Source: Macrostomum lignano
Taxonomy: Eukaryota
Assembly: GCA_002269645.1 (NCBI GenBank)
Contig: NIVC01000104.1
Span: forward strand, 310,001 to 374,000
Direction: 5' to 3'
Length of the DNA stretch: 64,000 nt
The position numbers and the translations under genes are program-made. Below are positions 3,801 through 8,081 of this stretch, piece by piece. Position 1 is the first letter of the stretch. Each line of letters opens with the position of its first letter. The notes under the pieces were generated by a model, which was not told the origin of the DNA, ran no database searches, and saw nothing but the letters and a program-made list of their open reading frames with translations.

Positions 3801-6800
3801 GTGAGATCCTGGGTCAAGAAAGTGTTCCAAATGAGATCCTGGGTCAAGGAAGTGTTCCAAATGAGATCCTGGGTCAAGGAAGTGTTCCAAATGAGATCCT
3901 GGGTCAAGGAAGTGTTCCAAATGAGATCCTAAGTCAATGAAGTGTTCTGAATGAGATCCTGGGTCAAGGAAGTGTTCTGAGTGAGATCCTGGGTCAAGGA
4001 AGTGTTCCAAATGAGATCCTGGGTCAATGAAGTGTTCTGAATGAGATCCTGGGTCAAGGAAGTGTTCTGAGTGAGATCCTGGGTCAAGGAAGTGTTCCAA
4101 ATGAGATCCTGGGTCAAGGAAGTGTTCTAAATGAGATCCTGGGTCAATGAAGTGTTCTGAATGAAATCCTGGGTCAAGGAAGTATTCTGAATGAGATCCT
4201 GGGTCAAGGAAGTGTTCTGAGTGAGATCCTGGGTCAAGGAAGTGTTCTGAGTGAGATCCTGGGTCAAGGAAGTGTTCTAAATGAGATCCTGGGTCAATGA
4301 AGTGTTCTGAATGAAATCCTGGGTCAAGGAAGTGTTCTGAGTGAGATCCTGGGTCAAGGAAGTGTTCTAGAAGTGATCCAAAGTCAAGAAAGTGTTCTGA
4401 GTGAGATCCTGGGTCAAGGAAGTGTTCTAGAAGTGATCCAAAGTCAAGAAAGTGTTCTGAGTGAGATCCTGGGTCAAGGAAGTGTTCCAAATGAGATCCT
4501 GGGTCAATGAAGTGTTCTGAATGAGATCCTGGGTCAAGGAAGTGTTCTGAGTGAGATCCTGGGTCAAGGAAGTATTCTGAGTGAGATCCTGGGTCAAGGA
4601 AGTGTTCTGAATGAGATCCTGGGTCAAGGAAGTGTTCTGAATGAGATCCTGGGTCAAGGAAGTATTCTGAGTGAGATCCTGGGTCAAGGAAGTGTTCTAG
4701 AAGTGATCCAAAGTCAAGAAAGTGTTCTGAGTGAGATCCTGGGTCAAGGAAGTGTTCCAAATGAGATCCTGGGTCAATGAAGTGTTCTGAATGAGATCCT
4801 GGGTCAAGGAAGTGTTCTGAGTGAGATCCTGGGTCAAGGAAGTGTTCTGAGTGAGATCCTGGGTCAAGGAAGTGTTCTAAATGAGATCCTGGGTCAATGA
4901 AGTGTTCTGAATGAAATCCTGGGTCAAGGAAGTATTCTGAATGAGATCCTGGGTCAAGGAAGTGTTCTGAGTGAGATCCTGGGTCAAGGAAGTGTTCTAG
5001 AAGTGATCCAAAGTCAAGAAAGTGTTCTGAGTGAGATCCTGGGTCAAGGAAGTGTTCCAAATCAGATCCTGGGTCAATGAAGTGTTCTGAATGAGATCCT
5101 GGGTCAAGGAAGTGTTCTGAGTGAGATCCTGGGTCAAGGAAGTATTCCAAATGAGATCCTGGGTCAATGAAGTGTTCTGAATGAGATCCTGGGTCAAGGA
5201 AGTGTTCCAAATGAGAGTCGGAGTCAGCAAGTGAAAGCAGCAGATCAAAGCCTCACCCCGAACACGATCTGCAGCAAGATCACGCAGATTCCCAGCACGT
5301 AGACTCCAGCGAACACTATGATGGCATATTTTTCATTGGCTTGCAGCGAGTGAGTGGCTGGGAACAGGGAGGCCACCGAGTGCCAGATGCTGAGCAGGAC
5401 TAGGAATAGCAGGTTGTGCATCACCGCCTTATCCTGCGGAGTTTGCGGTGGGAAGAGACTGGAGGTTTGAAGAGCTTCTTCATCTTTTTTTAATACTGTC
5501 GCCCCTTCTCGATTTGCTCCATCCCTGCCCCTCCCTCTCTCTCCCCCTCTCCCTCTCCTTCTCCCTTTATCTCTCCTCTCCTTCTCTCTCGCCTCTCACT
5601 TTCTCTGCCCTCTCTCTCCCCTCACTCTCTTCTCCCCTCTACTTCTCTATCCCCTCTCCTTCTCTCTTCCCTCTCCGTCTCTCTCTCCTTCTTTCTTCTC
5701 CCTCCTTCTCTCTCCCCTCTCCCTCTTACCTCTCCCCTCTCTCACCCTTCTCCCTCTCCCCTTTCCCTTGCTTTCCCCTCTCCTTGACCCTATGCCTCCA
5801 TCTTCTCCCTCTCTTAACTCTGCTTCCCTCTCCCATTCTCACAATTTTATGCTTTCCAAGCTCACAATCGTAATTCAGCAGCCATAGCCGCCCAACCTAC
5901 CAGCATGGTGAGATAGGACACCCTGGGAATGTGATTGGCAATCACAAACTTGAACGTGACGGTAGTCAGCAGCAGGATGAAGGACAGCTGCAACCGGCCC
6001 TGCAGGTTCTGCCGGTCAATGCCGAACACGCACAGGGCCAGCATGCAGAGGATGAAGGACACGAACCAGATGTTCACCACGTAGAAGGTGGCCCTGCGAG
6101 TTGCTCTGGTGCTGAACTGCACTGCTGGCCGCTGCCTGGGCCCAATTTGGCTGTCAGAGATCACACTGGTTTTGCTGGCCTCCACGTGAGTGTGCAGGCT
6201 CCACTCCTGCTCGTCTGTGAACGTGCTGGTGAACACGCGTGATGGCTTGTCTGGCATCTCCTGCAGTTCAACTGCCGCCTCGGGCAGGTTGGAGCAGACT
6301 GTCACCGTGATGTCCTGGTTGGGGGTGTTGGGGCTGATCCTGAACAATCTGAGACAATCTTGAACAATCTGAGATAATCCTGAACAATCTGAGACAACCT
6401 TGAACAATCTGAGATAATCCTGAACAATCTGAGATAATCCTGAACAATCTGAGATAATCCTGAACAATCTGAGACAATCCTGAACAATCTGAGACAATCC
6501 TGAACAATCTGAGACAATCTTGAACAATCTGAGACAATCCTGAACAATCTCAGACAATCCTGAACAATCTGAGACGATCCTGAACAATCTGAGACAATTC
6601 TGAACAATCTGAGACAATCCTGAACAATCTGAGACAATACTGAACAATCTGAGATAATCCTGAACAATCTGAGACAATCCTGAACAATCTGAGATAATCC
6701 TGAACAATCTGAGACAATCCTGAACAATCTGCAATGATCTCCCCTCCTACCTGGGTGTCAAACGGAAAGTGCCACAGCTCCATGCGCTCAAAGAAGCGGC

Positions 6801-8081
6801 CCCTGAGGCTGTGCCGCTCCAGCACGAAGGCTTCGCCAGAGGAGTTTCTCGACAGCTCTCGATCGCGACGGTGCATCAGGTCGCCGATGCTGTTGTCTAT
6901 GTACAGATCCGGGTGCCAGTGACACGTAGCGGCGTTCGACTCCGACGGAGCGACATCGGAGGCAGCGGCGGAGGATGCGCCGCCAGCGTTTCTGTCGTTG
7001 GCGACTCCGAAGTCCAGCGATGGCTCCCTCCACTGGGCCTCGAGGTAGACGGAGGCGTCGAAGCACTCCCGCACAGTGTCGATGTCACCAATCTTGGTGA
7101 AGACCAGCCGGAGGAATACCTGGCGCTGCATTGGGGTTGAATACAGATGTTAAATGAATACAGATGTTAGATGGATCTTAAACATAAAGGTAAACTCGTA
7201 CAGACAGACAGACAGACAGACAGACAGACAGACAGACAGACAGACAGACAGACAGACAGACAGACAGACAGACAGACAGACAGACAGACAGACAGACAGA
7301 CAGACAGACAGACAGACAGACAGACAGACAGACAGACAGACAGACAGACAGACAGACAGACAGACAGACAGACAGACAGACAGACAGACAGACAGACAGA
7401 CAGACAGACAGACAGACAGACAGACCGACAGACAGACAGACAGACAGACCGACAGACAGACAGACAGACAGACAGACAGACAGACAGACAGACAGACAGA
7501 TAGACAGACAGACAGACAGATAGACAGACAGACAGACAGACAGACAGACAGACAGACAGACAGACAGACAGACAGACAGACAGACAGACCGACAGACAGA
7601 CAGACACACAGACAGACAGATAGACAGACAGACAGACAGACAGACAGACAGACAGACAGACCGACAGACAGACAGACAGACAGACCGACAGACAGACAGA
7701 CAGACAGACCGACAGACAGACAGACAGACAGACAGACAGACAGACAGACAGACAGACAGACAGACAGACAGACAGACAGACAGACAGACAGACAGACAGA
7801 CAGATAGACAGGCACGCAGACAGGCACGCAGACAGGCACAAACGTACGCATCTGAGCTGCGGCATTCTCAGCAGCGGCAGCATGTCAGAGAGCCCAGACT
7901 GCTGCTGAGGCTTCAACCGCGCCAACTGCTGGCTATTACTGCTCTCTACTTCCTTCATGAGCTCGTCAATGCTGCTGCTACTGACTGTGGCGAAGGCCTC
8001 GTTAGTGTAGTCATGGTGGTGATGCTGCTGAGAACTGGGCTGATGAGGCTGTTGCTGATTCTGATATCGACTTTGCTGCAT
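878..8081 (-). CDS. Cys-less pentameric ligand-gated ion channel subunit (Pro-loop receptor), ~435 aa, 6 exons
   Basis: Exons 8081-7848, 7125-6751, 6314-5901, 5433-5257, 1999-1952, 937-878; all GT-AG, all phase 0. pLGIC motifs: IGDIDTVRECF..VYLEAQWREPSL, WHPDLYIDN, FPFDTQ, M1 RRATFYVVNIW, M2 GRLQLSFILLLTTVTF, M2-M3 IPRVSYLTMLD, hydrophobic M3 and M4. The last two small exons are less certain. Confidence 0.88.
2141..3110. repeat. 16-bp minisatellite (GGGATTTCGGGACTGT)n
   Basis: Direct reading; source of the spurious GISGLWDFGTV ORFs. Confidence 0.95.
3575..5215. repeat. 30-bp minisatellite (GGGTCAAGGAAGTGTTCTGAGTGAGATCCT)n, ~55 copies
   Basis: Direct reading; intronic. Confidence 0.95.
6337..6732. 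repeat. 20-bp minisatellite (TGAACAATCTGAGACAATCC)n
   Basis: Fills nearly all of pLGIC intron 2. Confidence 0.95.
7201..7810. repeat. (CAGA)n microsatellite
   Basis: pLGIC intron 1. Confidence 0.97.

Follow-up and report, generated by a model that had tools for sequence, protein, structure and literature searches.

Cys-less animal pLGICs (pentameric ligand-gated ion channels) were catalogued by Jaiteh, Taly and Hénin (2016; PMC4795631), mostly from Lophotrochozoa, with flatworms and a deuterostome sister group, and with no vertebrate members reported; in this clade, a polar residue takes the place of the first cysteine of the Cys-loop and a hydrophobic one that of the second. No member of the clade had been characterised, Macrostomum lignano was not part of the dataset, the alignment was trimmed at both the N- and the C-termini, and signal peptides and topology are not mentioned in that paper (PMC4795631). 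Johnson et al. (2023; PMC9874803) assigned to the same clade the Cys-less ligand-gated channels of schistosomes as well as planarian gabrg1 and gabrg2 (cited there as coming from Ross et al. 2018), all of which lack the Cys-loop cysteines, keep F/YPxD and contain neither PAR nor GEK. Here, we describe a gene of this kind on the minus strand of a 64,000-nucleotide stretch of the genome of the flatworm M. lignano (contig NIVC01000104.1, positions 310,001 to 374,000; hereafter, the window, to which all coordinates refer). The explanation that we favour overall, with moderate confidence, is that it encodes an intact member of the Cys-less invertebrate clade and that this member is, as we infer from sequence comparisons, a channel with an inverted membrane topology.

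A profile built from nine homologues defined a family of 616 cluster representatives at E <= 1e-30, and the best 150 of these were used for position statistics. Two leech proteins from the Jaiteh alignment, T1FRG1_HELRO and T1FT33_HELRO, scored 434 and 357 bits on this profile, against 43-47 bits for the canonical Cys-loop receptors used as controls, and the matches of bacterial type had E-values of 1e-26 to 1e-35. Both leech proteins also share the family signature (VF.K.GEI.T, WREP.LD, E..EL..FPFDTQDL, F.DEQEW, ENRLQL). Judged by these scores and by the signature, the window family is the Cys-less Pro-loop clade of Jaiteh et al. An earlier interpretation of this DNA made from its letters alone (the sequence-only reading) had a Cys-less metazoan pLGIC as its headline, which is correct but not new; the clade was already listed in 2016 (PMC4795631), and the gene, framed in that way, is one more species for it.

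The closest solved structures by sequence are those of ELIC (Dickeya) and sTeLIC (from a Tevnia symbiont), which have in common with the window protein the absence of Cys-loop cysteines, the short M3-M4 loop, the R0'-L-Q2' start of M2, L9' and F16'. Unlike it, the bacterial-type relatives have a signal peptide, the proline of M1, a basic M3-M4 loop and almost no residues after M4, and the window gene departs from the prokaryotic ELIC/GLIC type in its five introns, the lack of a signal peptide and the tail of 35 amino acids (aa). The likeness to GLIC and ELIC proposed in the sequence-only reading thus holds for the core of the protein and fails at its ends, where there is no signal peptide and the charge bias is reversed. 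The canonical receptors (nAChR, 5-HT3, GABA-A, GlyR, GluCl) share the fold (Foldseek template-modelling score of ~0.6-0.7 on the target), the FPFD Pro-loop, the pre-M1 arginine, the M2-M3 proline and L9', but they have a short extracellular C-terminus together with the features of Cys-loop receptors in the strict sense that the window protein lacks, namely, the C-x13-C disulfide, the signal peptide, the M1 proline and the long intracellular M3-M4 domain. The schistosome and planarian channels, compared here by description only, are all reported with Glu at -2' (PMC9874803), where the window gene has Gln. The "secondary" Cys-less channels of nematodes (D. immitis Q70GM3 and C. elegans lgc-34) lack the first Cys-loop cysteines, as the window protein does, and represent an independent loss in another family that falls inside the clade of anionic Cys-loop channels and keeps the second Cys-loop (PMC4795631, PMC9874803). 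The Alvinella channels Alpo1-7 retain the disulfide and form a group separate from the window family, which is also missing from the genes treated in the spiralian-motif paper.

The window protein has the pLGIC fold, that is, a β-sandwich domain followed by four transmembrane helices, M1-M4. It matches the Pfam domain Neur_chan_LBD (PF02931) with E = 6e-8 (32.8 bits vs the gathering score of 26), in agreement with the assignment made in the sequence-only reading. When the PDB was searched with phmmer, sTeLIC (E = 6e-11) and ELIC (3e-9) came first, followed by nAChR subunits and DeCLIC, all in full-length alignments; the sTeLIC alignment, which spans residues 80-394 of a 403-aa provisional model (64-378 of the final protein), covers the β-sandwich and all four helices, colinear with solved channels. 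The AlphaFold2 monomer (mean predicted local distance difference test score, pLDDT, of 72) contains ten β-strands and four helices, with the M4 helix running to residue 406, and Foldseek aligned it with GluCl, GlyR, GABA-A, ELIC and sTeLIC at ~1e-18 over ~330 columns. The proline of the β6-β7 loop, P182, is invariant in 90 family members. The protein is predicted to assemble into a pentamer with an ion pore that is gated when the β-sandwich domain changes state.

Within this fold, several hallmark residues are replaced. Splicing of exons 2 and 3 on the minus strand yields ERMELWHFPFDTQDI, as the sequence-only reading had written it, so that both Cys-loop cysteines are substituted (E174-RMELWHFPFDTQD-I188), and FPFD (F181-P182-F183-D184) is kept. 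This Cys-less Pro-loop (6309..6789) is split by a 436-bp intron (6750..6315) made of a 20-mer tandem array. The exon 2/3 junction is identical in two annotated M. lignano proteins (P0001 and P0002, 100% across the junction), and transcript contigs from other species, which are free of introns, run through the same Pro-loop stretch without a break (L001/L002). Alternative acceptors within the 20-mer intron that would restore a cysteine were ruled out because none of them is in frame with the donor, which is in phase 0; no junction restoring the cysteines was found. Nor is the loss confined to one assembly: it is family-wide, with Glu at the first Cys position in 121 and Leu at the second in 141 of 148 members. 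One M. lignano gene model (P0003) omits 38 residues including the whole Pro-loop (ERMEL|TFTDEQ), which is probably a misprediction and not a true transcript.

The proline of M1 (6086..6021, exon 3; FYVVNIWFVSF) is lost as well, as had been noted from the sequence: in N267-I-W-F-V271, the valine aligns with the M1 proline of sTeLIC, and in the 150 family members this position is I, L or V, with 0% Pro, while the proline is present in the controls P0013, P0185, P0186 and P0187. The M1-M2 loop that follows, IDRQNLQG, leads into M2 (5996..5934, exon 3), which carries R0', Q2', I6', L9', T13', K15' and F16' and is followed by an M2-M3 loop with P316. At the entry to M2, N-L-Q-G-R(0'), neither PAR nor a -1' Glu is found, again as previously described: the -2'Pro/-1'Ala/0'Arg of anion-selective pLGICs is replaced by Q-G-R, and the Glu ring of cation-selective pLGICs is absent, with Gly at -1' and Gln at -2'. 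The family consensus of the pore entry is P(-3')-Q/E(-2')-N/D/S(-1')-R(0'), with E at -2' in 22% and D at -1' in 14% of the members, R0' in 99% and K/R15' in 98%, and the family pore lining (Q2', T/I6', L9', T/A13', F16') is ELIC-like. The M3-M4 loop, SLFPATHSLQANEK, has the bacterial length claimed for it, measuring 14 aa. All four of these odd features recur throughout the family, whose members here include rotifers, annelids and molluscs as well as a brachiopod, a flatworm and an echinoderm. The gating-interface and coupling residues are kept (FPFD, E81 of β1-β2, pre-M1 R259, M2-M3 P316, YLT-LD), nine of these positions being invariant in a 90-member alignment and the others conserved at 79-98% in the profile alignment.

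The sequence-only reading assumed an extracellular orientation of the large N-terminal domain. Both the completed gene model and the comparison across the family speak against this, through the absence of a signal peptide and a reversed charge bias; altogether, the topology argument rests on five concordant but indirect sequence indicators. A 10-aa Kyte-Doolittle mean above 2 was detected in only 4 of 126 N-termini, indicating that signal peptides are absent family-wide, and a transmembrane-like segment in only 6 of 108 N-terminal extensions, 4 of which belong to fused multi-copy gene models. In-frame stops upstream of the start codon confirm the absence in the window gene and in the transcript contigs of one member (P0012), whose protein has just 10 residues ahead of β1, and the rotifer and Dimorphilus members begin 10-12 residues before β1. 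In the bacterial-type controls P0186 and P0187, in contrast, signal peptides are present (Kyte-Doolittle values of 3.3-4.1), M1 keeps its proline, the M3-M4 loop is basic and the tail is missing, and P0013 is an ordinary Cys-loop receptor with a signal peptide.

The distribution of charges runs in the same direction. The M3-M4 loop has a family-wide median of 17 aa and is net acidic, and that of the window protein contains a single basic residue and is net neutral, compared with 5 K/R in the loop of sTeLIC. After M4, the family conserves the consensus [KR]4-x-M-x-x-K-D-[RK]-x-Y, which is followed by a hydrophilic tail with a median of 45 aa that reaches several hundred in some members. Lysines and arginines number 8.5 on the domain side vs 3.7 on the opposite side, and 116 of 123 members show this bias. 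The β-sandwich domain contains fewer N-glycosylation sequons than expected by composition (85 observed vs 115 expected, z = -3.0), with 69 of 125 domains (55%) containing none, and the 17 long M3-M4 loops contain more (17 observed vs 9.7 expected, z = +2.65), several of these loops also having a pair of cysteines. The Goniomonas and Holothuria relatives show the same unusual architecture. This combination (neither a signal peptide nor an extra transmembrane helix, a short acidic M3-M4 loop, a conserved polybasic motif and a long tail after M4, the charge bias and the sequon pattern) appears to be previously undescribed; full-text literature searches for inverted, cytoplasmic or signal-peptide-less pLGICs returned nothing relevant.

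The tail of one Adineta vaga member (P0203) contains RRHS and RHSS, motifs of basophilic-kinase type that would fit a cytoplasmic tail, in this single sequence. N-myristoylation was considered as a family feature and dropped: the M. lignano protein itself starts with MG, but across 144 members MG falls outside the eight most frequent starts. Domain fusions were uninformative as a topology marker, with a single Pfam match to DUF4706 in ten long family models, located at the C-terminus of a Helobdella model and possibly resulting from a gene-model fusion.

Large N-terminal domains that lack a signal peptide normally stay in the cytosol, and basic residues tend to stay on the same side under von Heijne's positive-inside rule. 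We accordingly lean, if cautiously, to an N-in/C-in topology with a cytoplasmic sensor domain, and it seems marginally probable that the whole clade of this gene, together with the similarly built Goniomonas relative, consists of pentameric-channel homologues that are inserted into the membrane upside down. Given the lack of a signal peptide, the role of a type II signal anchor would fall to M1; the cytoplasmic side would then hold the β-sandwich domain, the M2-M3 loop and the basic tail, with the polybasic post-M4 helix on the inner leaflet, and the M1-M2 loop and the short M3-M4 loop would face outward, on the exoplasmic side. The domain and the M2-M3 loop would in this way remain together on one side of the membrane, an arrangement that the fold demands. 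Folding of the domain in the cytoplasm would explain why a disulfide is missing and how the glycan pattern arose, and would make a signal peptide unnecessary. The trigger of such a channel, in the plasma membrane or an organelle, could be a metabolite, pH or a divalent ion acting from the cytoplasmic side.

Several considerations weigh against this proposal. To our knowledge, there is no pLGIC with a cytoplasmic β-sandwich domain, which makes the prior low. Signal peptides and topology were judged by simple hydropathy and charge counts, and the statistics on sequons and cysteine pairs come from related sequences, with only 17 long loops among them. The pre-M1 arginine and the M2-M3 lysine or arginine lie outside in canonical receptors, too, so that the charge argument comes down mainly to the M3-M4 loop vs the post-M4 tail. 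Large N-terminal domains are occasionally translocated without a signal peptide, as in neuregulin-1. The Pfam domain Neur_chan_memb scored just under its gathering score (22.6 vs 28.1 bits), and what can be said of ligand and selectivity amounts to guesses.

The principal alternative, which we consider possible but rather unlikely, keeps the same clade and fold in the canonical orientation, with the domain extracellular or luminal, so that the protein would be an orphan neurotransmitter- or pH-gated surface channel; M1 would then be a reverse signal anchor, or there would be an unrecognised signal, and the basic helix that follows M4 would be placed at the outer leaflet. Every relative that has been solved or characterised is oriented in this way, and the coupling residues and the ELIC-like pore are kept. 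Related flatworm Cys-less channels, which may or may not belong to the window family, are also reported in sensory neurons and with RNA interference (RNAi) phenotypes (cited in PMC9874803). The canonical orientation, however, has to accommodate more than 100 members with neither a signal peptide nor an additional N-terminal transmembrane helix, two of them with upstream in-frame stops, and it requires that as many as 460 residues, a folded domain among them, be moved across the membrane once they have been synthesised. In addition, the charge bias is opposite to that of the bacterial controls, the conserved [KR]4 motif and the tails of 35-200 aa would lie outside the cell, and 55% of the supposedly exposed domains lack a sequon.

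The gene itself was modelled by tblastn of the annotated M. lignano protein P0002 onto the window; it runs on the minus strand from 16192 to 878 and comprises six exons that encode 418 aa, with all junctions GT-AG and in phase 0. Exon 1 (16010..16192, aa 1-61, MGNSQAAV...GDGKLR), delineated by the tblastn match and a GT donor in phase 0, encodes a hydrophilic N-terminal extension of which residues 1-58 are predicted to be disordered (pLDDT < 50); since an in-frame stop codon, TAA, stands two codons upstream of its ATG, this exon leaves no room for a further N-terminal extension. Exon 2 (6751..7125, aa 62-186), with 100% identity to P0002 and the Neur_chan_LBD match, opens with RQVFLRL, encodes β1-β6 and the first part of the Pro-loop (ERMELWHFPFDTQ) and ends in ...FPFDTQ|gtagga. 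Exon 3 (5901..6314, aa 187-324) starts after ccaaccag with DITVTV, likewise in phase 0, encodes β7-β10, the pre-M1 sequence TRATRR, M1, M2 and the start of M3, and ends in SYLTML|gtaggt. Exon 4 (5257..5433, aa 325-383; ccgcag|DKAVMHN...QIVFG|gtgagg) encodes the remainder of M3, the M3-M4 loop (5370..5329) and M4 (5328..5257). Exon 5 (1952..1999, aa 384-399), which was identified from tblastn, frame and splice sites, encodes the polybasic post-M4 motif (ALRRKKLMDEKDLQYQ), and exon 6 (878..937, aa 400-418 and the stop codon) the acidic C-terminal end (ISTRNQISPFDEAESGESP).

The range given in the sequence-only reading, 5257-7125, does hold three coding exons; the gene has six, the others being outside that range, and exon 4 terminates at the donor GTGAGG (5256) and not at the stop codon that the range implied. 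An open reading frame (ORF) at 8081..7848 (MQQSRYQ...) was tried as exon 1, in combination with a stop at 5245, and dropped, as the first exon starts at 16192 according to tblastn, which also revealed two more exons at the 3' end. This ORF of 78 aa on the minus strand (7848-8081) is rich in Q and H and has a good ATG, and its GTACGT donor fits the phase of exon 2; it is present in no annotated protein and could be either an alternative first exon or a chance occurrence. The UniProt model P0005 uses an optional cassette exon of 32 nucleotides (1605..1636, minus strand, AG/GT borders), which puts the last exon in another frame, so that the tail of P0005 is a different one and strongly basic; most of this tail is 100% identical to the window.

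Protein searches retrieved annotated M. lignano proteins that are 99-100% identical to the window protein (P0001; P0002 = PAA61427.1). The exact 418-aa protein is absent from a collection of 15 billion proteins, in which the nearest entry differs by 4 aa, as does P0002 (PAA61427.1) from the six-exon model; the window gene therefore is another copy or assembly version. Altogether, no fewer than three near-identical copies are annotated in M. lignano, along with a paralogue at 53-55% identity. The existence of these copies bears on the possibility that the gene is a decaying relic or pseudogene, or else a non-conducting scaffold or receptor with the pLGIC fold. The loss of several hallmark residues, the Gly in the -1' ring and the unassigned function would be compatible with such a fate, but nothing interrupts the ORF over its six exons and the splice sites are clean, the family is found in six phyla with the gating-interface residues and L9'/F16' kept, and the odd residues are conserved replacements and not the outcome of random decay. 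We regard a relic or a non-conducting protein as very improbable.

Tandem arrays, each with its own repeat unit, fill almost every intron of the gene (2165-16001). They comprise a 16-mer at 2165-3107, a 30-mer at 3569-5216, which generates a spurious ORF of 551 aa, a CT-rich array at 5531-5785, the 20-mer at 6337-6731, ACAG at 7200-7835, a 25-mer at 8688-10129, a 40-mer at 10779-11413, a 23-mer at 11890-12995, another 16-mer at 13043-14554 and GACA at 15206-16001. The neighbouring exons, all on the minus strand (22045-22491, 35768-36712, 41222-42862 and 53300-59812), encode the V-ATPase subunit d, a WD40 protein, the KDEL receptor and a lamin (Filament and lamin tail domain); GACA-type microsatellites interrupt these genes as well, and the context is that of ordinary eukaryotic housekeeping genes. 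A recent horizontal transfer or bacterial contamination, to which the order of the PDB matches might point (sTeLIC at 6e-11 and ELIC at 3e-9, ahead of nAChR), is refuted by the five spliceosomal introns and the eukaryotic neighbours (V-ATPase d, KDEL receptor, lamin) and sits poorly with orthologues across animal phyla that are 33-39% identical vs ~24% for bacterial-type relatives of a different architecture, so that we assign it a negligible probability.

As stated in the sequence-only reading, the protein is an orphan with the pLGIC fold and without Cys-loop cysteines, PAR or -1' Glu, and Q-G-R within NLQGR gives no assignment of selectivity. By eye, the aromatic positions of loops A and B look replaced by acidic and basic residues, and loop C is variable. 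In the region of loop F and β9, the motif F-x-D-x-Q-E-W is invariant and might, speculatively, form a cation site. Where the window protein has Q-G at its pore entry, ELIC carries an acidic residue; by analogy with ELIC, we would guess, with low confidence, that the pore is weakly selective or cation-permeable.

The clade is distributed across Spiralia and reaches echinoderms. Named members, from protein searches that include two word-indexed profile searches (20 and 39 matches, a list of taxa and not a census), come from the bdelloid rotifers Adineta and Rotaria, the annelids Capitella, Owenia, Dimorphilus and Helobdella, the molluscs Pinctada, Mactra and Gigantopelta, the brachiopod Lingula, the sea cucumber Holothuria and, distantly, the protist Goniomonas. 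The matches of the family searches included no vertebrate proteins, none from parasitic flatworms, and none from Schistosoma or Schmidtea. The sea-cucumber members P0155 and P0210 carry the misleading name "GABA receptor subunit beta-2". One match (P0180) comes from the transcriptome of Siedleckia nematoides, an apicomplexan parasite of polychaetes, and the matches attributed to Siedleckia are probably host (annelid) contamination. Four gene models of 2000-2700 aa (P0093, P0124, P0136 and P0159) contain 5-7 family domains each, which suggests tandem gene arrays in some genomes that were merged by gene prediction. Many echinoderm, annelid and mollusc members (P0155, P0210, P0181, P0180, P0182, P0017, P0025 and P0008) have in common a short amphipathic helix motif before β1, such as LSLLRNLESKV, AIRSLEHTIKQ or AIKHLEKTI, which the window copy of M. 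lignano lacks.

An architecture that departs, across a whole clade, from all characterised pLGICs carries more weight than the record of a single gene. The presence of this clade in flatworms, without vertebrate members having been found, is of some interest for thinking about anthelmintic targets, and the inverted topology would be cheap to test, in M. lignano, where RNAi and transgenesis are available, and in standard expression systems. If the topology proposed here is correct, there would be a simple explanation for the loss of the Cys-loop disulfide in this clade, and its members would be pentameric channels that are gated by intracellular ligands or reside in organelles, a mode that is undescribed for the superfamily. 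The best-studied family of neurotransmitter receptors would then also be used by these animals as an intracellular sensor or organellar channel.

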